NCBI GenBank assembly: GCA_964035545.1
Contig: OZ037768.1
Span: 5,488,741-5,552,740 of the forward strand
Reading direction: 5' to 3'
Origin: Bugula neritina
Lineage: Eukaryota; Animalia; Bryozoa
Length of the DNA: 64,000 nt
Each line of letters opens with the position of its first letter. The stretch's first letter is position 1. The notes under the pieces were generated by a model. It ran no database searches. It was not told the DNA's origin and was given only the letters and a program-made list of their open reading frames with translations. Shown here piece after piece: positions 13 to 61,200 of this stretch. The translations under genes were made by a program, and so were the position numbers.

Positions 13-7561
<7,549 letters not shown>

Positions 7562-8454: not shown

Positions 8455-35648
<27,194 letters not shown>

Positions 35649-35650
35649 TA

Positions 35651-41100: not shown

Positions 41101-42202
41101 TAGACTATAGTCATGTCCACAATATAATCATCGGCTCTAACAGGATATCCCTGGCAGCTGCTGTCAGTCAGTGTGACAGCATGTCAGTTATACCTGTCCT
41201 TCTCACATCACAGCTTTGTGGCAATGCTACTCAGGTGCTTGTTTTCCCATTTTCGTTTTACTAATGTTGCAGATATTAGTCTAGTTTTCGCTCTTATTTG
41301 AATGAAAAATTTCTGTAGAGATAGTTTGATAGTTTTTTAGGTTTGCTGCTTAAAAGCTCTTTTTATAAATAAATTTACTTTAGTTTTTTATGTGACATTA
41401 GCTAAGAAAGTCTTTGTTTAATATAAAATTCTGAACTTTGGAAAACTTGGTTATCATCAATATTCATTATAAAAGAACATGTCAGGAAAAAATTAAGTAT
41501 ATATCACAGTGATTATTGCCCTTTGGGAGTTGTGTTCTTTTATTTGATATTTTTCAATGCATGTATTCAACAGGTTGGTAGAGATATGGCAGAGTTAGCT
41601 AAGCGGATATTGAATACAGGAGAAGATTTAGATTATGTAGAGGGTTTGTTTGAAGGCACTGTAGCATTTGAAGAAGATATCAATAATAAAATTAAACAGG
41701 CCAAGGATTTGGCTATTGAGCAGAATTCACAAGTATGTCTCCTATTTGGTGGTGAGACTACTGTGGAGGTCACTGGAACAGGCCGAGGTAAATATTACAT
41801 GTATTTAAATATTTCACTTTTCATATACACCATAGATGGTAAATGGTGATGATAGTACATCAAGTTAAATGCTGATTGCTCTTTTTTGCAGGAGGTAGAA
41901 ATCAGGAGATGTGTTTGAGTGCTATGATAGCAATGGACTCCATGAACCTGTCTCCTAATTCTGTAACCTTTGCATCTATTGGTACAGACGGTCAAGATGG
42001 TCCAACCAGTGCTGCTGGTGCAGTGGTAACACCCCTCTGTTCCAGCACGTCTCAACTTGATCCGCTCGCTTTTTTGAAAAACAATGATTCCCATTCATAC
42101 TTCAGTGAATTAGAGGGTGGAAAGTTTATCTACAACACTGGATTAACAGGCACAAATGTTATGGACATCGGGTTAATGTTGTTAGATTTTAAAGATTCCT
42201 AG
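38183..42202 (+). CDS. GLYCTK: Glycerate kinase (class II, DUF4147 + MOFRL domains), 9 coding exons
   Basis: Exons ~38183-38288, 38556-38704, 39255-39439, 39557-39708, 40013-40188, 40651-40782, 41024-41234, 41574-41787, 41892-42202. Motifs [115 protein letters not shown]. The ATG at 38183 is inferred from phase; the N-terminus is Arg/Ser/Leu-rich like a mitochondrial presequence. Confidence 0.95.
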
Positions 42203-43805
42203 ATATGTAGTTTGTTTGTCACATAGCGGTTTGTCACAATGCAGGTTAGTACTGGGTTAAGGGTAAACTTTGATTAGTAATTGTGCCAATTCAATATAAA
42301 GCAGCTAAAGTTGGGTAAAACTGAGCTATTAGGATTACTGTATATTGCTTGGTGATTTTATTGTAAAGTACACAGACATTTATTAGCATTGTGATTCCAG
42401 ATACTGGAGTTATTCTCTTTTTAACTTTGGCAAAGCATTTGTAGGGTTTTTTATGTTTAATGACAAATTTTATGGTTTTGTGTTACTTTTAGTTACCTTG
42501 ATGCTAGTTAGATCAGTTTTAAATTTTGAACATTTAGATGTATATTTTATGCTAAGAATTATAGAATCTACTATTTTTGCAATTGCTATGTTTCCATGTT
42601 AACTTGTGTTGACGTCACGCAACCAAGTCTCAATAGTTACCAGTTAGTGCTATTTTAGAAATTCTCATTTACTAAAATCATACAGTTTTACAGCTTGATC
42701 AGCCAAAACAACTAAAAAAGATTACTACTTGTTGAATAAAACACATTTACTTTGTGCATTTATTTCTTAGTCAACATACAGTAGGTTATTTTTACTGTAA
42801 TTGTATGTTGTTTTACTTTATATGCTTTTTAGTATAGGCTGTAGACAATCTTGATTTTTCTTGCTACTCAAAAATAAATTTGAAAAGTATGTTAAATTAT
42901 TTTTTGTTTCTACTGTTTAATCAAAAATTTATCTAAACATAAAAAGCATTAGAAAACATTTAGAAGAATTTGGAGATTTTTAGGAAATAAATTTGCTTTA
43001 AATTGTGCAAGAATTTTTCAATCTATATGCACATAATATATTCAACTCAAAGCTATCAATTAAAATAGAATCTAGGATGCAACATGTTGAATGCTATGCC
43101 ATCGCTGCTTTCTATCTGTTTCCCAAAGCCATGGCTTCGTTTGTAACAAAACAGATTTTGTCTGTACCAGGAAATATCAATGGAAAAACCAAGCTTGGTT
43201 AGAGGTTTTATATTTATAAATCTTTCCTCAACATTCTGGTATATAGTCCACTATCATATCTATGCTGACAATATATTCTATAACACTTGGGTCTACTTGA
43301 ATACCCACTCATAAAACAAAACTAAATGTCTAGAGTTGCTATGCAGTCTGACAAAAAGATAGAGAAAACTGATCATGCTGTGAATGACGGTCAAGTACTA
43401 GGAAATCACAATATGGTAGCCTTTGATTGATTTGACAAAAATCTGTCACTTTATTCTCAGACCAGTTCTGAGCCAATGGCTACTGCGCAGCACTGAGGCA
43501 CATAAAGAGACACTGATGCCTGCTGTGATTGGCCTTTATAATCAAGTCAAGGGTAGGTCTAAGGGTCGAACTACTACATTGCAAAAAGTTAAGGCAATGG
43601 AAGTCACAGTCATCATTGGCTGCAAGCCTAATCTGCATAAGCACGGTAGGAGAGGGGATGAACGAGGATGCCTTAGTCTAAGGATTCTCTATCTGCAATC
43701 AGTAAAAGTCAGTCACATTCAAATGTCACACTCAATGCCTATGGTCAATAGCGAATCAATGATGTTAAGAGTGAATGCTGCCGTTTGTGCTTTGCTGACA
43801 ATACC

Positions 43806-43885
43806 ATCACATTGTGTACTATCACATTGTGTACCAACACATTGTGTACCATCACATTGTGTACCAACACATTGTGTACCATCAC
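43806..43885. repeat. 15-bp minisatellite (AwCACATTGTGTACC)n, about 5.3 copies
   Basis: Directly visible tandem units. Confidence 0.9.
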
Positions 43886-46296
43886 CAACCACTGCTTCAC
43901 AAGCTACGAAACATATTCTTGTAATACATGGAGTACTATATTGCTGCTTGCAACATTTATATTCTTTTTCTAGCAATCCAGAACACGATATTTCGCACTT
44001 TTTTAAATGTTAACTTTTTATGATAAGTAAACTTTATGTTACATGTGAATCTATTCCTTGTATTGCCCCCATTAGGTCTAACAAAAATTAAACATTGATC
44101 TCTAGATTAAAATCACTGTATAGATGCACTGTAAGCAAAAAAAGATAATTTTGAACCATAATCTGGGCTTTGCAGGGTTAATAGGAACATTTGTCATATT
44201 CTAACTTAATTTTACAAGATCAAATTAGATCTAAAATGACCTTAAGCCGTATAATGTAAACTAATGTTGAAAAACCTTCACCACCTATAGCGCACTACAT
44301 ATCACTATGTTACTAATATTGATCTGATACCAGCTATTTCTGACCTTTCATTTTGATCCATCTTAATTTTTTAATGTCAGTTACTAGCAACATACTGCGC
44401 ATGGCAAGATGGTGTAAAATGTTGTTTGTGATGTCACATGATCGTCAGTCAGCAATACTTTGGGTGAGAACACAACACAAATTGTAATTGTAAAAAGTTT
44501 GTAATTGAGTAGCGGAAGTTACTTCAAGCTATGCTTTCTCTATTGAAGTAATATGTTGCAACAATACCAAATAACGCTACGGATCAAAAATTAATAAAGT
44601 TCCGTCTATAAAAATTTTAGATATACTGTAGCAATACACAAAGCTTAGTAGTGTAATAGGTGTTACCGTATATCTTGTGTATTCTGTATTGAATAGCCAC
44701 TTAGAGATGTAAAAGTTGGTTTGAACCAAATTGGAGTATTAAAATATAGAATATTCAGCTATAGAATATACAGCATGGGTATTCTTGAGCCCAAAATTGT
44801 GTTTAAAATAGTGTTTTCCGTGGTTTAAAAGCAAATGTTAATGTAGCAAACATGTTTAGAGTTTAGTTTTCAATCAGCACACATACTATGTTCATACATG
44901 ACTACAATGCGATTTGGTCTAAGATTAACACATATTTGACAAAAGCAATTTTCTCACTAAAAATATATCTTACAAATATTGTGTGATTAAAGTACTATAA
45001 GCAAATACGCTTTTCTTTTTTGTAAAACCTAGTTTATCAGTTTAAATTTCATTGAAGAAGTTGTTGGCTAAGGTTCTGTCCAAGAATTTTGTCAAGGATT
45101 TGTGATGTGTTGCAGCATATTAAAGCTAAACAAAAAAAATTTTAACAAGTATTATTTGTTAAGTTTACATAGGAATACAGCAAATAATTCTTCAAACTAC
45201 TGTTGGGCAAAAAAGAACAAACATTAATTTTGGTTATTTTGCTGTGCTTTTTTTCTTTTATTTTCAAAAAAGAGTACCTCCAAGAGAGGGCTAATTTTCC
45301 TAAACACGTTTTTAACTCAAGTTCTTATGTTCAATGTTGTCTACAAATTTTGACTTTGTTGTAAAGTATCAAATTAATATCATACATACATATGTAGAAT
45401 TATTAATAAGCAAAATATAAACGAATTTACCATAAATTTTAAGCCCTAGATTTGGGCTCTAGCCCAATAATCTTTGACCATCAGCTTGATTTAGGCTCAC
45501 TTGACACATTTGAACTTTGCATTGTCCATAATTAATACAAAAATCTAACAGAATCCTCTATCCATGGTAGAGTCTAACAAGAATACAAGTTGTACCAAAA
45601 AACATTAATTAATCATGCCACCAAAATGAATAAAATATACCATCTATTTTATCTTCTCAGTCATCTGGGGAGGTATTTATTTTTTATGAGCTTCTAAAAT
45701 TAAAGTATATTAAACATATTTGAATAATTGCTGCTTTGCTTTTCATAGTTTTGGCACATTGACCTGTGATGTAAATTAATAGCTTCAAAAAAGTATTATT
45801 TATCATTTGTCTTTTTATGATATACATGCATACTTGGTATGACTATTCAAAACCATAGCATCTAATCTTCAACTTCAATAGGAGTTTAATAGCAGTGAGG
45901 GTAAAGCATTGAGTTGTAAGTATAAAAATAGCACAGGTTCTAGTAGTCTAGGGATAGCACTGTACAATGTATACAATGTTATAGCATGTAGTGCAGTGTG
46001 CATTTATTATGTGGCATATTTTAATCACCATCATTATAAGCTTGTATTTCGTCATACCATATAGGTAGTTGTAGTCACGTGTACAGTGCAGAGTAGCCGA
46101 AACTACTTGCTAGTTGTTAAGAAGTAACAAATATATATGTATATTGTATACATCGCTGATGGGCTTGAGGCACTGCTACCATGCACTAGTTACCCCAGTG
46201 GCAATCCAAGGTTACTTTTATATTTAATTATTTTTTCGCATAGAGATTGGAATTGCATGGTTTACATCTAACTGCAATTGCTGATTCTATTAAATA

Positions 46297-46302
46297 TTTA
46301 TT
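46297..46302 (-). other. Candidate polyadenylation signal AATAAA of the peptide-precursor gene
   Basis: TTTATT on +, about 130 nt downstream of the TGA at 46433. Confidence 0.5.
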
Positions 46303-46432
46303 GTTACTAAAAATCTGGACAATTTCCTATCAAGATATATTATAGCTTGTATTAAACAAATAAACAAAAAGTACACAATTCACATAAAGATTGATACGCA
46401 CGTTCCTATATTAAACAATTCTGCTGACATTC

Positions 46433-46675
46433 TCAATAGTAATATTTCAGTTTAGGCAGCAACACGTTTGACATCCAGTCAGCACTCTCACCCACGTACA
46501 GTTCACCACGCTTCCCAAAGGCATGATGCCTTCTTCTCGTTGCTGAGTTATTTTTAGCTGAGTTAGAGTTTCTATTTGTTAAATATGTGTTGCCATCCAA
46601 CAGTAGTGGCCCAGCAACAGTCACCCTTGTCACTTGCAGCATCAGCATACATAGCAGTATTAACTTGGTCCACAT
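46433..46675 (-). CDS. Putative secreted amidated neuropeptide precursor, 80 aa (HHAF-amide, possibly allatotropin-like)
   Basis: MWTKLILLCMLMLQVTRVTVA|GP signal-peptide-like N-terminus; ...NSAT-RRR-HHAF-G-KR... convertase plus amidation cassette; acceptor ttttcag| at 46727; upstream donor AAG|GTAAGC at 47228/47227; downstream AATAAA. Confidence 0.7.
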   Translation of the reverse strand: MWTKLILLCMLMLQVTRVTVAGPLLLDGNTYLTNRNSNSAKNNSATRRRHHAFGKRGELYVGESADWMSNVLLPKLKYYY

Positions 46676-47227
46676 GTCTAAGATACAGATTACTCTTTCT
46701 CTTTGGTAATCTGTATGAAGTTGAGTCTGAAAATTTAGAACTGAAAGCGTTTAGTAATATAGTTTACAACATTAATTTCATATACATTAAGTAATAATAC
46801 AATCTATATTAGTGGTTGAAAAAACTGTAATTATAACTTATCAAAAAAATATTGTCAAAATTCATTCCAATAAACTATGGATGTAGGTAAATTTAAAACA
46901 CGTTTGTAAAATTAAATTGTAATTGTAACTTGTATTACACTTTTTTCAATTACAGTAACAATATAAATTTCAGCTGCAATAACTTGTAAATTAACTTAAT
47001 GAATATTTCTTCTTCATAACACTTGTGATGGTGGCAACTAAGTATTTACATATTTTCTACCAGTATATAATATTTAGATTAAAGGAAATATGATCATTTA
47101 AGAATTAGCAAAAGTTTTGAGTGCTAAAAAAACTTTTTATACTGATGTACAAGAAACTCAAAGTGAATTATCAAACTTTTGTTCCCCAAATTTTAGTAAA
47201 CAATTCAATAACATTTTGTATGCTTAC

Positions 47228-47320
47228 CTTCGTTATGCTTTCTCTCTGTGCTTTCTTGTCACTGTATTGCTGACTTTTATACTTGACTGAGTGAAATTGA
47301 CCAATGAGATGCTTTAAAGC
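47228..47320 (-). promoter_or_regulatory. Candidate core promoter and non-coding first exon of the peptide-precursor gene
   Basis: Minus strand: TTTAAA (47318-47313), 30 nt upstream of the A of an Inr TCAGTC (47290-47285); also TATAAAAG at ~47281-47274; then the strong donor AAG|GTAAGC. Confidence 0.55.
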
Positions 47321-49270: not shown

Positions 49271-52200
49271 TTATTTGCGGTGAGGATTGTGTATGTGAGA
49301 GAAATGATACGGAGGGTTGCACAGTGAGGCAGACATGGAGTAATATTTGTTCTCCTTCAGCACCTCCTCTATTACACCATTTAGTTGGCTGTAGGAAATC
49401 CCATGTGTGATATCTTTTTCAAGACCACCTGCGGAATCAGACAAAATGTCACATGTACGGCAATGAAATTTACCTCCCAGTTCAATCATCCGGAAGTGTT
49501 TATCACCATCTAATTCATGTACTAATTTAATGACATTAATAGCAATGATTATTTTACTTGCAAAGAAAAGTATTAAATAGAATAAATTCACAACTATATA
49601 ATTTATATGGCCTCCTAACTATACAGCCTCCTAACTTGGTACTCATAACTCAGTCAACTATTTTACTCACTTTCATGATCAATGGCCGATCCATTAAGAG
49701 GCTTGGTGTGGTTGGTTGCAGTAGCACCTTGAAGGTCAAAGTTTCCAAAATTTATATCTACTAAATCTGCTGAATTTTCTGCCAGTTTTGTGAGCTCAAT
49801 TTTCAAATGAGTAGAGCTTGTATTTTGTAGAAATAAAGTTCGTTTGAATTTATCCACAATACTACGACATGGATTGTGAGAGAGAGATGGAGGTAGCTGT
49901 GAGATGTAAATGATTTTATGCAATACATTGAGCAACTGCTGAATTGGATCTATCTCTTTCACTTTACTGGGAGAAATGGAGAACGTATTGGCCCCGTTTC
50001 CTGTACTCACTAGAAATACAATGTTTAGTAGTAAACTGATTCAGTCAGCTTGGCAAAATAAATGTAAACATAACACAAGTTTTTTAAACGACATTTGCTA
50101 CAAAACATGAAAATAAATGCCAAAGTATTTGTTTGACAGCCACTGATTTGCCTTTGTTTATTACTAAAACACAAGAGTGATTTGCTTAGGTTAAAAAATA
50201 CGGTGAAATGATCAGTGAACTTATAGCCATAGAATAACTCCTGTCTCATAGTATAAACTACAATAACAGTAGCCTGCTGGGTACGCAAATAACACCAACT
50301 GAGAAGGTAAATGCTATGCTGTATATGATTAATCTGCTACTTGCAGTGTCACATACCAGGACGCTTTTTGCCACCACTTCTCTCCCGCTTCCGTCTGTCA
50401 ACTGCGGGACTGCTGAGACTTCTGAGGAATATCTGAGAGACTTTACCATTTGGAGACGGTTCACCAGCCGAGCTGCTGCCAGAGTCCCTGGCTCCGTATC
50501 TGGCGAGTGCTGCAAGAGATACAGAGTCAGCATGTCTCTTTCTTATGTTCCATTCATCAACTAATAGTTGTTTCAAACATACTCATTCATATATTTAATC
50601 ATAAGATTTTGTTTTCCTAATACACATAGAGAGTAAATCAAATCATTGTTATTAAGATAGTTACAACACTTACGAGGTATCTGTACTTCAAGGTTGCTTC
50701 TCAAGTCAGACTTGTTAGAACGAGGTGCGGGCGGTGGTTTTTGCGTCTTGAAAGCATTTGAAAGTACCGTGCTGCCGTTACTGTCACTACTAGACAAGTC
50801 AGCTTCATCGTCTCCACTTGCACCTCCTTGAAATATTCCACAAGAAATTGACATGTGGCCATAAAGAAGTTGCGATATGTACAAATTTATGAAATGCTAT
50901 GCAATTTTTCATGATTAGAAAGTTCAATACATTCTGAAACTCTTTTTTTTCAAACAATCAATTAACAAAATCTACAAAGCAAACATAGATTATGATAAAC
51001 CAATGTTACCATTGTACATCTGCAATAAACTTTTATAGTTTTATTGCTAATATCATAGACTTTTGAAAAATGTGCTCTCTAAAATTCTCATGTTTTACTG
51101 TCGCTAATAAATTACTGGCTCACCTAACAAGTTATTGTTTGGGTCCACCATATAGTGATTGCTGATTCCATGCTGAGCAGCTGAAACACTCATGCTACCA
51201 CTTTGGGAGTTTGCCAACTTGTCATATCTTTCTTGTGTAGCCATAAACAACTTCTGGTAACTATTTTTGTAGTCATTGGCTTTGCTATGGTGCCTTTGTG
51301 TCCTCTTTCTTTCCTTCTCCAACTTTCTCTCTAAAGAGAATTGCTTGTGTCGTACAGACTCCAAATGTAGCATCATTTCCTCAACTATGAAGCTGGCCAC
51401 ACCCACAATATCAGGTCTTTCTGCGGGTTTCACAGTCAAGCACCTAGAAGAGAGTTTGATAACAACTTGCATAAAGAGGCGTAGTTTACTATGTTATGTG
51501 TTACATTTACTTTTATATTCAAGCATGTAAACTAAACTTCTTGCTACTCATATAAAATAGCAAACCATAATCTATAGACTATTACATACATTTATTTTAC
51601 CCGATATTGTAAAAACATCTTCTAAAATTATTCATGTACAAAAGTGAATACAACATGAAATTTAGAACGTAGTTTCATAAATCAATAGAGCTGATGTAAG
51701 CAAAGTAAAGATGAATAAAGAGCAACAGGGAACCTAAAACTTCATTTCCTCTACAAGAAATGAACATGTGTTCAAATCCTTTATTTTTTTCAAGCGAAAT
51801 ATTACTAAGCATGTATTTAAATAAATAATTATTCTTTCGAAATGGTTAATACAGAAGCTAAGATTTAGTAAGTAATTATCACCTGTACATTATTGCTTGT
51901 GATAACTGACAACATAATTACTTTGGCAACGTTTAGATCAAAGGTAGACATGACATTTATCATCACCACATGAGCCGACATAAGTGTTTATGCATAAAGT
52001 TTCAATAGAACCATACAACAGCACATGAAATCATTACCAAGTATCGGCCAAAAAGCACCAAACAATTAGATAACTTATACTTGTCTACTGGTGAATTCAT
52101 ATAATAGCTTTTCAGTATATATTCATACTTTGAAATCGTGCTCTCTATCTTTTTAGAATAAGCACCTTCAGTGAGGGGTTTGTAAGAGCCAGCGACAATA

Positions 52201-55200
52201 GCACTAGCCAAGGCTAACATGTTACTTGTGCTAAATGGAGGACTCAGCGTGCACATTTGATACAATATACAGCCAATAGCCCATATGTCTGCCTTCTCTC
52301 CATAGGGATGATTTTGCACAATTTCTGGGCTAAAGAAGACAGAAAACTATACTATATTATTCACATCCAATTTACAGCAAATTTTAGAAATTTAAAATGC
52401 ATTTAAATATTCATTCTACAATAAAACAAGTATACTGTACTCAGTAAATATTCTCCATAATCTAGCAGTCTAGTGGTCATAGTCTCTTATATGCATATTA
52501 TGTTAAATTTTAGATACTTCGCCAAGACACACATGTATTAGGAATAACTAAACCAGGCATACAAGCTTTTCTATGATTATATAAGGAATTATCTTACCAT
52601 GAATACTGTAAAGTACCCACGGTAGATCTCATATACTGTGCATCTGCTTTCTTGTGTTTGGCCAATCCAAAATCAGCTAAAAATATTTAAATCATATATG
52701 TTCAACAATATTGACACTATACACACAAGAAGGCATGGAAACCAGCAGTGATGGTGTCACTAGAATGCATGTACTTAGTTTTTCTGAACCAGAATAAGAG
52801 AGCTAGTCACTTACTTATAGTGACTTTGTCATTTTCACTCAGCATGATGTTGTTTGGTGTCAAGTCTCGGTGGACAATACTCTTCTCTTTGTGAAGGTAC
52901 CGCAGAGCAAGCACCATCTGAATGAAGATGTTCCAAATACGAGACTCTGAGAATGTTTCTTTCTTCTCCTTTAGAGACTGAAAATGTTCACCAATTGGGG
53001 CTCCGTCGATCAGCTCCATCACAATGCAAAGCTTGTTCGACTCTGTTGCAAGACAAGTAAAACAACCAATCATAGACTGAGAACAATTTTTACGACATAC
53101 AAGAATTTTTACATACACTTTTTTTACTCATTTCATTTACACTGTCATCTGCAAATCTTAAAGAAATACTTATAAATAGCGTGATCCACTAATATAAGCA
53201 CAAAATCACCATGATGAAATATTTGTTGACTGACTTTTTTTCTAGAATAAAGCGTATTGAAGATTAAGAAACTCACCAACAGTGAATGTTCTGTAGTACT
53301 TGACAACGTTGGGATGTTTCAACTCGTCTCGTATGATGTTAATCTCACTGATTATCTCTCCTGCACTTTTATCTCGATCTTTGACGTTCTTTGCTATCAT
53401 TGCTAGGTTTACCTAAAGTCATCAAATTTTCTTATAGCTTTTCGATCATTGCAAGAACAGCATTCAAATTGGATGATTTGAACCAAATCTCAAAATTAAA
53501 ATAACTAGTAAAAATTATTATGCTATTTTAACCAAAATATACTGAATACAAAATTTACAATAAAACTTTCACCCAACATTAGTCTATGTTTTAAATGTAC
53601 TGTACTCAACTGAAAGTAAGTGATCAAATATTTACCAACTATGTTTGACAAAGACAGCTGAAGAAATGCTGGTAAGCATGTCATACCTGGGCCCTAGTCA
53701 AATTGTTTGATGGTATTCGGTCACCCACCACTTATATCATTAGAAGGCTTAGTATTTACTTAATCCACTGACTTAATTGATTGAATTCACTAAAATGCCA
53801 TGTTACAGAAGAAAAATGCGCCATCATGTAAGGTTAAATATACCCGCTACCCAAACAGGACAGAGCAGAGATAGGAGAGGATAGATGAGGATGTAACGTT
53901 AAATATTACTTGAATTGTTTCTAAAGTGTAAAGACACTATTTTGACAAAAATCAAGCTGATTAATGGCAAGGAAGAATTCTAAATAGCAAAAGATCTTTA
54001 GAGAATAGCAGGATTTTTATAAAATACATACACGGAAAATATATTTTCTCAATTCACAACTGACAATGCTTACTTCTTTCAGAGCAAAATATTCTTGGGT
54101 ACGATTTCTTTTGCGAACTTTGCAGACACTACCAAACGCCCCACAGCCCAGTTGCTCCAACACAGCGTATTCTTCTATAAACTGACTTATCTCTCTCTGC
54201 TGGTTGGTGCTTTCAATACTCTCTTTTAGGTCAGACAACTCCGACTCCTTAAAGCAAAATCATGAAACATAACAAAAGTGTGTTTATAATGTGAGTGTGA
54301 GGCATACAAGCATAGCTACATAATATTAATACAAATTTATAATATTGCATAAACTTGCATACGTTACGTGTATACTACTATATATACTATATACTACTAT
54401 ATATACTATATAATATATACTACTATATATATTATATACTACTATATATATTATATACTACTACATATACTATATACTATTGCAAGTTTGATTTTTAATT
54501 ACAAAATTCAACAATTAACCACTATTCATAATTCATCACTAAGAATGTATAAGATAAACGTCTTGCTTGCTTTTAACGCACAGGATATGCCATAAAAATA
54601 TTAACTAACTTTTTCAGTTATAGCAATAAATCAAGGTGTAGTAAAGCAAGAAATTGCTAATACATTTTTATAATATTAAAACATAATAAAGTCAAATACA
54701 ATGAGAAGGCAACTCCAAAATAAAATGTTTACATACTAAATGGTTTCAGAGTGCTCCAATGTAGAGAGATATTGCATATATACACTTACTGGTAGGGCAT
54801 TCAGCATGTCTACCACAGATTGATACTTCTCAATATTGTGAACGTAGTGACCAATATTAGTGAACGCTGTGAAGATTGTGTGCGACTTGTGAAAAATCCT
54901 CTGAAACATTCGGCGATTGCCCTCCTTGCTAAAGAGAAACCTCAATGTCCTCAGAGCATTTTTCTGAAAATTAAATCCAGCACGATTTATAATTTAGTTA
55001 GCAGTTAAACTATATGCTTACAGAGTCTCTAATTAATATCACAAAATGTTAAATATGAGTATTAATTATACACAACTTAAATTTTACACACTATTTCTTG
55101 GGTTGAAAGTTTCATGGTTCTAGTGTTGTTGATCAAATATACATCATGAGGGGAAAACTCCAAGCTTCAACTGATGAAATTTGTTATGCAACTATTTAGA

Positions 55201-58200
55201 TTGGGCCAAACAAAAAAAGCAAACTTTTAAAAATATGTCTAGTCATGAAAACTCTGTTTAGAGAAATGTTTTAATTTTCTGACTCAGTATATTGAAATAT
55301 TACTAAATATAATCTCAAGAAGTTAGGAAATCTCTATTGACATTTTGTATAAACTGTTTACATAACACAAACAAGTTGGTTGTTTTAAATGACTTGTTTA
55401 CTGGACAAATATAACTACTGCATTTCATTAGCTTATCATGCTATTATCTTAAAAATGTCGACATTAAAAGTTGATGTTTTAATAGCTGCTGACGTACTAA
55501 ATGCATGCAGACTTGACAGCTCATATTAAACAAATATTTGCATTGATTTGATTTTAGAAAGTATTTTGAACATGATTTTAATAAAACACAGAAAACATAT
55601 CCGGAATGTAAAAAAAATTAAATATTATACTAAATAAATATTTGTAGACAAGAGACCCCACCTGTAGTGTCTGAGTGACTTTGTAACGCTTCACGTCTGG
55701 CAGCACAAGCAGGCCAATAGCGTAGACTCCATTGTTACTCACAATCTGCTGAGAGTTGTGGTCGTTTCTGATGAGTTGTGTTAAGGCAGCGCAACATGCT
55801 GACTTGAGAAGACAGACCTACAGCATAGCAACATTAAAATAGAGTTGTGTCATTTCAGTAGAAAACCAAATTAAATTTAAAACAATTAAAGTATGCAACA
55901 AGTATCAAAAATTCGCTCATACACATTGTTTTAAAATGCAATGACCTAAAAAAATTAAAGAGTTTTAAACTAATTCATTTAATATAGTTTACTTATGAAA
56001 ATTGGTAAAAATGCTATTCTCAACAGAGCTAACCAAGTGTCTGTTAGAAATGCTGATCTCAAGCTTTATACCCAACAGTGTGACTGAAACTAATAAAAAG
56101 ATTAGTAAATAATCAATCAATCATTTTAGCAAAAACCTGACTTCATGAAAACTACTGGTTTTATTAATTTAGCTTAGTTTAGCAAAGATAAACTGTTCTT
56201 TCTAACTGCGGGGGGGGGGGGGCGTACCTGTTCAACCATTTCTTCAGAGATGCCATTAGCAACGACAGCACCATTAGAGTCATCTGAACTAACACTGAAC
56301 AGTTGTCTAGCAACCTGCCGGCCACCCAGAGTAGCTGACGTGGGGGTCGGTAGTTCAGAATCGTTAGAATATTTCCTGTCCCTACATGCAACACAATATT
56401 TACAAAATTCATATAATTAAATTTTAGTCATATTTTATACACAGTAGACAAGCAGAACATTATTTAATACAAAGAGAGTTACAAATGAAAGATGTATGAG
56501 TTTGCATGCACTGACCGTAGGAGATTCAGAAGAAGTGGGATAACTCCAGAACTGCGTAACTCATTAGATGTATCAATGTCTTCAGCCAGTTGAACAATGC
56601 ACCAGATAATATTTCTCAGTAGCTTTAGGTCACAACCGTCTAACAAGCTGTTCATACAACATGAAAACTCATACATGTAATACACACTCAATAGTACGAC
56701 GTGTCTTCATTTCATCAGCCATGTAACAGTGTACTGTATTGTATAATATACTGCATGCACTAAAAGATGCATTTCAAAACCGCAGGCAACTCCCACAGAA
56801 TATAATGATATTGAACATACAAATACATTTAAGTTTAAATAAAACAGCTGCCAAAGTTTAAATTAGGGAGCCAGAAAATAATTGTTGCCTTTGGAGTTAT
56901 AGCACATGTTACTGTATCATGGGAGACAACTTTTTTTTGCTATGTCATCATGTGTTGTTATTACTGTATAAAACGACCAGCTAGTAGTCTGTATCAAATT
57001 GTTGCATGCAGGTAAATACCATAGACTATTAAAACATTTTACTGCTGGGCTAGAGCTGGGTTTGATAATAATAGTTATTATAGTTATTATAATAATACAG
57101 AATACAAAATCCAATAAATTATATTAATTATACAGTCTAATTTAAATTAAGGCTTGCACAAATAATTAAAAATTCTTTTTTAATAGTTCAGTAAATAAGA
57201 CCACCAAAACACTGCTATAAAATGAGTTAGACACTTATGACAGGTCAATACAAGCTGATATGACATAATAGACTATACTTTATATATTATTATATTATAT
57301 TATTACTAAACTCTATATATTACTATATTTTTATATACAAAAGCCTGCCACAATATACAAATCTGATAGAGGACTGAATGTAAGAGTAAGGTTAACTACA
57401 TTTTTGAAAAAAATTAAACCTGTGATATTTCTATATTGTATATAATTCTATGTTTAGTACCTGAGAAGCTGGGGTATTCCATCATACACTCTCACTAACT
57501 CTCTTCGAACTTGACTGTCTCCACACAGAGTCTTGAGTAACTTGGAAGCATATCTGTATAGTTACAACACTTTTTATGTATTATATAATATATGTTCTAT
57601 ATATACACACACACACATCAATCTATGTTTAAAGGCATGATAGTTATAGTGTATAACAACCAAGAGGCATATCAGTTTCTATAAGTTAATTTAGTTTCTT
57701 AATAGCTAGTGGCATTCTACCAAATTAAACATTGCAAAATCTAAGCTCTACCAACACAACTACGTTCTCATGAATCATCAGTAAACTTTATCCATAAAAA
57801 TAACTGTGACCCTTTAATTTTAGTTTTAATTATCAACTCTGCTAGATTAGTAAATTCTATTTACACCTGATTTGCACTTATTTGGACAAGGTAACTAGAC
57901 CCAGAGTAGCCAATCTCATGACCGTAAGTTACACCTCTCAACAAATTATATTTAAATATTTTACAACACTAAGGAACAATTGGTAATTGTAATTCTATCA
58001 ATAAAGCAATCATTTGAAACTGTTGAATAGTTTGGATTGTAAACATAGAAGTATTCATCTTGCTCTAGCAGTCTATTATTCAAGGTTATGTTGCATAAAA
58101 ATGACTTCAACTGCCTTGTTAAACAAACTTTAGTTTATTTTAAAAATAGCTTTAGATTGCAGTTTGCTAATCAAATTAGTGTCAACATGAGCCCAGTATG

Positions 58201-61200
58201 AGTCTAAAACCACCTACCTCTTAGAATCTAAGTCGTAGTCTTGAAATATTTCAAGGATGATCTCAATGCAATTGAGTTGACCAACTGCACACCTCGTACT
58301 TTCACTGAAACACATGAATAATTCAACTTAACTCACTGCAAACTTATCACAATGCAAAGAATAATTTGATTAATCAGTTTGAGTTCAGCAGAATGAAAGA
58401 AACCACAGAATGCAAACTGACTTCACTTGAAAAGCTCTACCAAAAATTACAAACTAAATGAAACTAAATTAAAAAAATATGCCTTTCTGGCTAATAATGT
58501 TTAAATGGCCAAATAAAAAGTGTAACCATATTATAAACATCACATTATCAATGATATATATCATAGAGTAAATGTTAGCAACATGATGAATGTAGGAGAA
58601 GTAACCTCTGAACCAGGTCTTGTAGAGAATACAGAGTACAGTGTAGCAGAGTCACATTTCCAGTGCTGAGTAACATGACCAGTGGTCTATGAGCTTCATG
58701 CTTTACTATCAACTCTCTGTGAGTGGATGAGAAACTGGACAACTTCTGGAATATATCTGCAACAGACATGTAAGTCATAGCTAGAGGTCAATGTTGTCTA
58801 CTCTGAGGCTAAGCAGCCTGTCGTCGCCGTGGTGAATACACGGTTTATAAGTTTGAGAAGTTTTTGCCTGGCTAGAAACCTGAGCTTAGAAATGTGGAGA
58901 GAGCCCTATTCACTGAGTTCCATTAGACTAAAGGTTCGCTCTCATTGCTAGGTCAGTTGGTGTCAGTAGGTGCCACAAAAATTACGATTATTAGTTTCTG
59001 GATTTACTGCAGTCACTCTAATTGACTCCCAAATGAATATTACCTCATTTCCAAAAAAATTCATCAAAAAATTCATGTGTAAAACTTTTACTTCTTAGCC
59101 ATCATTAAAAATAAAGTGTGGTATTAATTTAGATACAGCAATTAATATTCCCAAAACATAGTGAATGTTTATATTTTAATAATTCGAATTTTCATCACAA
59201 GAAAATTTTTTCTATCCTTTGGCTTACATAACTGCTGTTTAAATTATATCCTTGCTCATCAGTGGACTAAGAAAAAGTTTGACCAATTCGTGAAACTGAC
59301 AGAATCTACACATCAACTGGTGTCATAGGTAAGAGCAATGAGAATAAATATGAACTGTATAAGACCCTGTGGCCTACTGTTCATTACACCTGACATACTA
59401 ATTGCTATTTACTAAGGCAGTTCATATGACTATTACAAACTTTATCAACTTGCATCAATGATTTTACACACTCCAAGATAATATCTTTGAAACATAAGTA
59501 GTATTGATTAGCTTTATTGTTGTATATTTTCTCTAAAAATCATCAATAAATCATAATCACTCCACTGCTACATTCAAACAAAACATAAATGAAGCTTTCA
59601 TAAGAATTATTCAATATTCTGATGCTTCAACGCTCAGAAGTAAGCCGAATTGTTCATATTTGTTTGTGTAACGCATTCTACACCGTGTTGCGGCTCACAA
59701 TATAAACACTGTTACATTTTATCAGTTAGAATCATGTTTGCGTAACTTATAATTTGGAAATAATGTAGTGCATACTTTCACATACTCTCCAGTTAGATTA
59801 TAGAAACTGCTATTTATAGTTAGTTACGTTTTACAGTTTTAAAATCAATATGATGAAACTTTATTTATTAAAACCTTTCAGAAAAAAGCTGTAAGCCTAG
59901 TTGATAGTGTCCATTAATAGAACCTAATTTTACCATTTCAAAAAAATCATCTGGAATACCACTATAATACTGTCTGTTCACATTATAACACTACTACCAT
60001 CATAGTGCTTTACCATAGTACTATTGTATATCATGTTATATAATATCACAGTACTCTTGTACTATGGTTGTGGGTATCGTTTGTGAATGGTTTGTAATCT
60101 CACAGAATTGCTGACTTATAATCAGCAGCTAATTAATGTCCTTCATGTCAGACAAGTATTTAATCTGCTATAATACGAAATCAGTGACCGGATTTATTGT
60201 CTCCTGCCTTTTAGTTCATCCTTCTAATTATTTCTCTGTATTTTGCTATAGAAATGACATAAAGTAACCCCACATTCTGGAAAGTCATATAGCTGTGCGA
60301 GCAGATTGAATAAAAGACACATATTTCAACTAATCACAAATACTATTAAAACCTGTTAACATGAGAATGGTCACTCTTCCATTTATCAAAAACTACATGC
60401 TCCATCTTTTCATTATTTGGGCAATTTCAACATTTTTAGAGTTGCTTTATTTTTACGTTGAATTGAAGTATCTTGATTTCAAGTGGAGCTGACCACCTCC
60501 ATGTTATAGAGTAGAGCACAGTTTGAAGCAGCTAAACTGGCACATAACTAATTTTCATTAAATCTTAGTTTAATTTTAAGCCGGCATAAACAAGGGAACT
60601 TTAGGTGCAATAATGGAGAAATTAAAAAAGCATGTGTTCTAGATAAGAAATGTAGCAAAAGAAGTTACATTTTCATAAAAATTTCAACCCTTCCAAAAAC
60701 CAAAACTTAAGAAGAAAATTTTTCTATTTCTGCAGCTAAATAGTAGTAGCTCAGTAAAGCAGTGTACTATGAGCCAACAGTGTAATAGTTATAGTTATAG
60801 TTGATACTCACTGGTCATCTCTATGAGGATCTTGTCAGCAAACAAAGTCTCTTCCTCAGACAGATACCGCATGACAGTTGATTGGAAGAACTCGCAGAAC
60901 TTTGGCAGACCGCCAAGTTTGACAAACATTTCCTGATAGGTTGAGTCTCTCATAAGCATTCTCATAACTGTCATCACCCGGAAGATGTTCTCAAGGGGGG
61001 CTCTGTCTGTCCACACTCTATAAATAGATAATATTATCAAGAACTTCAACTATAAACTAGTAAAAATATTGTCCAACATGCCTACATAAATTCCTTCCAC
61101 ACACCCATTAGAATCAGCATATTTAAAATACTATTCACTCAATTTTACTTTTAACGGCTCAATATTTAACCAATTTATTGTTTTGTATATTATAAATTGT

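Follow-up and report, generated by a model that had tools for sequence, protein, structure and literature searches.

Within the window, by which we mean the whole 64,000-nucleotide stretch of Bugula neritina DNA that was analysed, a small open reading frame (ORF) raises the question of whether it encodes a genuine neuropeptide precursor and, if so, whether its peptide belongs to a signalling system of its own or to a known one. The sequence-only reading had made two proposals for the product, namely that cleavage at a tribasic site releases a very short amide and that the precursor is a divergent allatotropin, and it had held the gene to be the best candidate in the window for an undescribed signalling system.

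Structure of the locus

The ORF encodes 80 amino acids followed by a stop codon (46675-46433, minus strand), and its coding sequence lies wholly within exon 2. From the start codon onwards, the product comprises a hydrophobic leader, a 25-residue spacer, RRR, HHAF, GKR and a 24-residue tail. On the minus strand, the splice donor AAG/GTAAGC is found at 47228/47227 and the acceptor TTTTCAG/AC at 46727/46726; the proposed exons contain no ATG 5' of 46675, and the start codon has a purine at -3. The ORF with its signal-like start, the RRR, HHAF and GKR elements, the splice sites and the AATAAA were all borne out at the positions first read from the sequence. In the following list of features, L002 is a contig from a sibling lineage, and L033 and L036 are contigs from two other probable bryozoans that carry the orthologues.

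47274..47281, minus strand: TATA box (TATAAAAG), unchanged in L002, with an equivalent box in both orthologues
47228..47288, minus strand: non-coding exon 1, as first proposed; the GTAAGC donor at 47227 is kept in L002; no ATG; true 5' end 47288 or ~47250
46727..47227, minus strand: intron of the 5' untranslated region, 501 nt; GT..AG borders kept in L002, and an intron at the same position in the orthologues
46433..46675, minus strand: coding sequence, 80 aa plus stop, inside exon 2 (46726 to about 46280); dN/dS 0.08 against L002
46613..46675, minus strand: predicted signal peptide, residues 1-21, from heuristic n/h/c-regions and the -3/-1 rule; 0 changes in 63 nt against L002
46538..46612, minus strand: N-terminal spacer peptide, residues 22-46, unconserved in the orthologues
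46529..46537, minus strand: tribasic RRR cleavage site, residues 47-49, aligned with the KR of both orthologues; 1 synonymous and 0 replacement changes against L002
46517..46528, minus strand: HHAF, residues 50-53, predicted amidated core (RHHAF-amide should R49 be retained); it aligns with the final four residues of the pentapeptides of L036 (ending in QGF) and L033 (ending in HGF), with F invariant
46508..46516, minus strand: GKR, residues 54-56, signal for amidation and cleavage, unchanged across the four sequences aligned
46436..46507, minus strand: C-terminal tail, residues 57-80, with an allatotropin-like DW motif; 2 changes in 72 nt against L002; DW..N.L common to L036
46297..46302, minus strand: AATAAA polyadenylation signal, also found 3' of the stop in both orthologues
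49331..51472, minus strand: final exons of the NEK10-like kinase gene that lies upstream, a synteny anchor (kinase-exon comparison)
41891..42190, plus strand: exon of a MOFRL gene (glycerate-kinase type), which is the convergent neighbour on the downstream side and the other synteny anchor; found by tblastx against L036, where the corresponding ORF matches Pfam MOFRL at 1.5e-22

A clear TATA box (47281-47274) falls within exon 1 as first drawn. The sequence CACAG lies 31 nt past the start of this box in both Bugula and L033, and an initiator is present at a similar distance in L036. Given the box inside the proposed exon and this initiator spacing, transcription of the Bugula gene may start near 47250 instead of 47288.

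The gene is present as a single copy in the 216-Mb assembly and follows the last exon of the NEK10-like kinase gene at a distance of 2 kb, on the same strand. A crude signal-peptide rule picks out three of the 107 ATG-initiated ORFs of at least 50 amino acids in the window, and the Bugula ORF alone among them also carries a Gly-basic-basic site. The NEK10-like gene itself (49300-61050, minus strand) encodes its kinase domain at ~52-54 kb and has N-terminal exons of armadillo type, and its exon order is collinear with L036. Elsewhere in the window, a large cadherin gene of the Fat/protocadherin-like type occupies 16000-35650 on the minus strand; its coding sequence starts with an exon that includes a signal peptide (34179-35648) and continues downstream through many exons of cadherin-repeat and EGF-like type. 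The region covered by this gene also includes a tRNA gene (29200-29272, minus strand; Rfam 69.8 bits), which is presumably intronic. The long ORFs at 10069-10455 on the plus strand and at 43750-43900 consist of short units repeated in tandem (YTLHTVYT-type and HNV-type) and look microsatellite-like and not like genes.

Conservation in a sibling lineage and in other probable bryozoans

In the protein collections the only close relative, 98% identical, is an ORF on a genomic JGI contig of 1.9 kb, L002. Its intron is ~13% divergent from that of the window, and L002 therefore represents a sibling lineage. Substitutions per site between the two amount to 3.7% in the coding sequence, 6.6% in exon 1 and 13% in the intron, and the coding sequence has no indels, against 126 gap columns in the intron. 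Seven of the coding changes are synonymous and two non-synonymous (dN/dS 0.08, Fisher p = 7e-4), and the TATA box and both splice sites are identical. Exact-protein look-ups returned genomic contigs only, and no spliced transcript.

More distant orthologues were sought by position, using the 122-residue NEK10-like exon as query. Relatives of this exon were found in several assemblies, and two contigs extend far enough downstream. The first, L033 (a Logan contig from a probable bryozoan, kinase exon 68% identical), carries a 167-residue ORF on the same strand downstream of NEK10, and the second, L036 (an ENA contig from a probable bryozoan, kinase exon 51% identical), carries a 94-residue ORF. 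Both ORFs begin with a hydrophobic leader, and both genes share with Bugula the layout of a TATA box, a non-coding first exon, an intron just 5' of the start codon and a single coding exon. The intron, 501 nt in Bugula, is 367 nt long in L033 and 83 nt long in L036, and an AATAAA follows the stop at a distance of about 290 nt in the former and about 100 nt in the latter. The peptide gene of L036 is followed downstream by a MOFRL gene in convergent orientation (Pfam E = 1.5e-22), an exon of which maps to 41891-42190 of the window, on the opposite strand to the peptide gene. Since NEK10-like and MOFRL genes flank the peptide gene in both the window and L036, the synteny is two-sided. No orthologue of the peptide gene was seen on the more distant contig L034 or on the short contigs L031 and L035. 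On L034, a non-LTR retrotransposon with endonuclease and reverse transcriptase ORFs (2900-5950) adjoins the NEK10-like gene.

The three precursors from Bugula, L033 and L036 are only 23-28% identical. Single pairwise BLASTP comparisons nevertheless gave E values of 1e-4 for Bugula and L036, 3e-3 for Bugula and L033 and 3e-4 for L036 and L033, all centred on the peptide block. In an alignment of Bugula, L002, L033 and L036 (alignment A2), leader and spacer are unconserved, and the sole strongly conserved stretch across the three lineages consists of a basic pair (KR, KR, RR), five residues ending in G/A-F, and GKR. The sequence-only reading had made conservation of the ORF and of its GKR site in close relatives one of the tests of its proposal, and GKR proves to be the same in all four sequences. 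The tails of Bugula and L036 additionally share the motif D-W-L/M-x-N-x-L and a tyrosine before the stop. In L033, two extra mini-peptides are encoded (6990-7214 of that contig), each a copy of HNGM followed by GK and one of them at the extreme C-terminus, and Bugula and L036 keep one peptide; the precursor has therefore been expanded in the L033 lineage. Collectively, we are highly confident that the Bugula peptide gene is genuine and conserved in bryozoans. It also illustrates that synteny can recover neuropeptide orthologues missed by sequence searches.

Probable relationship to allatotropin and competing explanations

Database searches with these proteins named no family. Pfam returned none for the Bugula ORF or for the L033 and L036 orthologues. 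A phmmer search with the Bugula ORF against 1.84 billion representative proteins (E <= 0.001) found the sibling copy, one bacterial protein and no allatotropin. The bacterial protein (P0002) is a cell-wall-repeat protein, and we rejected it as a chance match on its repeated unit. A word search with the Bugula ORF likewise gave only the sibling-lineage copy and the bacterial repeat protein, the same search with the L033 protein gave only its self-match, and two scans of JGI metagenome contigs gave no match.

We compared the three precursors with known allatotropins, which are listed for many phyla in the supplement of Thiel et al. 2021, covering 72 precursor groups (PMC8557429). These allatotropin precursors consist of a signal peptide, a basic site, a 12-14-residue peptide, a GKR site and a tail (PMC8557429). 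The peptide starts with GF-R/K and ends in HG-F/Y in spiralians and RGF in arthropods, and the arthropod tail domain begins with D/E-W-F/L/M and finishes in an EF-hand-like loop (PMC8557429).

The first peptide of L033 ends in HGF-GKR, which is the allatotropin-type end. The list of Thiel et al. contains this 6-mer 13 times, a figure equal to the number of nemertean allatotropin entries carrying it, and the passages shown are all of allatotropin (PMC8557429). When the peptide ends were scored against H-G-F/Y or R-G-F followed by GKR, HGF in L033 fitted and HAF in Bugula did not; L036 has QGF. The tail was compared with an arthropod-derived consensus for the first helix of the C-terminal domain (D/E-W-F/L/M ... 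E/Y-M/L), to which L036 conforms at 7/7 positions and Bugula at 5/7. The L036 tail also matches the Daphnia allatotropin precursor at 7/10 positions. ADWM is common to the Bugula tail and the Rhodnius precursor, where it stands at the start of the C-terminal domain, and PKL of the Bugula tail recurs in the tails of Aplysia and Terebratalia. In about 800,000 characters of neuropeptide precursor (pNP) collections, ADWM and DWLVN each occur once, both in allatotropin precursors. Among 691,620 six-frame residues covering all DNA analysed, the tail pattern matches the L036 gene only and the peptide-end pattern the L033 gene only; both patterns were composed after the bryozoan sequences had been seen, from allatotropin residues only.

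Several allatotropin features are missing. The Bugula protein fails both strict patterns, having HAF in place of HGF and two tail positions outside the consensus. Bugula, L033 and L036 all lack the GF start, a peptide of normal length and a dibasic site 13-14 residues upstream. The EF-hand-like loop (D-x-N/D-x-D-G) was not found in the Bugula ORF or in the 10 kb downstream on the same strand. The allatotropin precursors of the brachiopods Terebratalia and Laqueus are also without an EF-hand-like end (PMC8557429), so the loss of this loop does not exclude membership of the allatotropin family. By eye only, the stretch of the Bugula protein that precedes RRR is reminiscent of the N-S-A-S-R middle of gastropod peptides and, more broadly, of the middle part of mollusc allatotropins.

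A separate canonical allatotropin, for which the sequence-only reading had advised a check, was not found in the Bugula genome: IUPAC patterns revealed no HG-F/Y-GKR. Three genome matches to the peptide-end pattern were discarded, as they read GKS and not GKR. Fifteen matches to the EF-hand-like loop were also set aside, none being in an allatotropin context and the closest resembling a ryanodine-receptor exon.

The allatotropin precursors of arthropods (Manduca, Daphnia and Rhodnius; PMC8557429) share with the bryozoan genes a signal peptide, one amide with an aromatic end before GKR and a tail that starts with D-W-hydrophobic. They differ in that their peptides are 13-14 residues long, start with GF and end in RGF, and in that their tail runs into the EF-hand-like loop, which is absent in Bugula. 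Spiralian allatotropins, including the Aplysia allatotropin-related peptide and those of molluscs, annelids, nemerteans, phoronids and brachiopods, share the H-G-F/Y amide end, and L033 has it exactly. The bryozoan genes, in contrast, have a basic pair inside the peptide and no GF start, and Bugula has A where these allatotropins have a nearly invariant G. The phoronid members of the spiralian HFAamide family are superficially similar in their basic-H-F-x end before GKR (PMC8557429). HFAamides are, however, cysteine-rich with an A/T-amide end, whereas the Bugula protein has an F-amide end and a single cysteine, in its signal peptide; we rejected membership in this family since the cysteine framework is missing.

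On this evidence, the Bugula gene is probably a strongly derived allatotropin-type precursor and not a wholly new system. The divergent-allatotropin proposal of the sequence-only reading thus gains from the HGF-GKR end in L033, the full tail match in L036 and the ADWM of Bugula, is weakened by the lack of a significant database match, and is in our judgement probably right. We find no support for the wider claim that the signalling system is undescribed altogether, since the gene has the look of a derived member of a known system.

The main rival is a neuropeptide family specific to bryozoans, whose short amides end in G/A-F and which has no kinship with allatotropin; the HGF end and the DW tail would then have arisen by convergence or chance. 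Such a family would account for the absence of a significant database match to allatotropin and for the low identity of the three precursors, each of which has a different subset of allatotropin-like features. The two further short peptides of L033 (HNGM followed by GK) fit it as well, since they occur in none of the allatotropin precursors compared here, and the allatotropin patterns are post hoc. Nevertheless, two independent allatotropin-derived patterns match this gene family alone in about 690,000 residues, in the correct order and position within the precursor, and the rare 4-5-mers of the tails are found in allatotropin precursors only within the pNP collections. We consider an unrelated family rather unlikely, although it is the alternative that survives best.

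The broader assignment to neuropeptide-type prohormones rests on several observations. The heuristic predicts signal-peptide cleavage after residue 21 in Bugula, and the orthologues likewise have hydrophobic leaders. The basic-flanked peptide, with a Gly before its C-terminal site, is conserved across species. In a protein language model, nearly all neighbours of the Bugula ORF are small neuropeptide precursors, including PDH, DH31, NPF, PrRP, spexin, galanin, GnRH, gastrin/CCK, NPS, NPFF, tachykinin and CCAP, with no family dominant. Allatotropin and orexin are absent from these neighbours, and the neighbourhood supports the general neuropeptide-precursor class only. A secreted peptide could use the same convertase and amidation machinery in a non-neuronal role, such as host defence or a settlement or adhesion cue; short amidated peptides also exist outside nervous systems. 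Conservation focused on a five-residue amide between processing sites is, however, typical of receptor ligands, the language-model neighbours are neuropeptide precursors, and the Bugula protein has neither a cysteine beyond the signal peptide nor a cationic amphipathic stretch, so that a non-neuronal role appears quite improbable.

Least credible of all is that the ORF is the first coding exon of a larger gene with an incidental GKR, or a chance ORF: a good donor-like GGTGAGA does lie inside it (an internal donor could be GTGAGA at residues 61-63) and the frame is open for 17 codons 5' of the ATG, but only two changes in the last 72 coding bases, compared with about 10-13% in the intron of the L002 comparison, argue against an internal donor making the tail intronic, the tail is conserved with L036 as far as a stop at the equivalent place, no allatotropin-type or other further coding exon was seen within 10 kb downstream, and the dN/dS of 0.08 rules out a chance ORF.

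Predicted products, receptor and significance

The basic pair is kept exactly five residues before GKR in L033 and L036, with little else conserved upstream, which indicates that the released peptide is short. This agrees with the earlier proposal of a short amide cut at RRR. Peptide precursors are, by standard rules, cut by convertases, trimmed by carboxypeptidase and amidated by PAM. Following these rules, the 80-residue Bugula product would enter the secretory pathway, where its signal peptide would be removed after Ala21. Prohormone convertases would then cleave at RRR and after GKR, after which a carboxypeptidase would remove the basic residues and the glycine would give rise to the C-terminal amide. 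The predicted end products are likely RHHAF-amide or, with the third arginine removed, HHAF-amide, together with the 25-residue spacer and the 24-residue tail peptide. The corresponding amides of the orthologues would be GHQGF-amide in L036 and NNHGF-amide in L033. That the Bugula product is secreted, processed and amidated, that it is expressed in neurons and that it acts on an orexin/allatotropin-type receptor are all inferences.

If the Bugula gene descends from allatotropin in Bryozoa, a basic residue would have arisen within the ancestral 13-14-residue peptide, so that only the C-terminal end is released, and the EF-hand-like second half of the precursor tail would have been lost. The gene is thus probably a derived form of allatotropin, one that lacks the GF start and the EF-hand-like half of the tail and has an internal cleavage site. 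As a more tentative suggestion, bryozoans as a group may cut a 13-14-residue allatotropin down to a 4-5-residue amide by means of the internal convertase site, with the L033 lineage multiplying mini-peptides; in its alternative form, this suggestion would make the genes an independent bryozoan-only signalling system. A receptor for an allatotropin shortened to 4-5 residues must recognise the C-terminal core only, or have been replaced.

Orexin is the sister system of allatotropin by receptor phylogeny. The vertebrate orexin precursor would resemble the Bugula gene in its presumed receptor family only, no sequence resemblance to the Bugula ORF having been seen. The Bugula genome has at least 77 7tm_1 matches, and narrow TM7 motif searches of it found no orexin/allatotropin-type receptor motif. 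The only GPCRs that matched allatotropin-receptor TM7 motifs were rejected: two look aminergic, and the third, on contig 3, is a multi-exon receptor of a different type. The six-exon rhodopsin-type GPCR at 3739-8005 of L026 (G000 contig 3, about 23.345-23.350 Mb) has a TM7 that resembles peptide or TRH-type receptors, and its other helices are not allatotropin-type in look.

An in-silico survey of Bugula neuropeptides from 2016 described 11 precursors, none of the present kind (PMC4990251). Our full-text literature search for Bugula with allatotropin retrieved no report of an allatotropin, and none has been reported from Bryozoa. A bryozoan allatotropin would fill a gap in the spiralian neuropeptide set. 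If the interpretation is true, the gene would be a clear case of a hormone shortened through a new internal processing site, and it would bear on how much peptide an orexin/allatotropin-type receptor requires. The gene also offers a concrete synthetic peptide for work on bryozoan larval behaviour and settlement, which is of practical interest in a fouling species.
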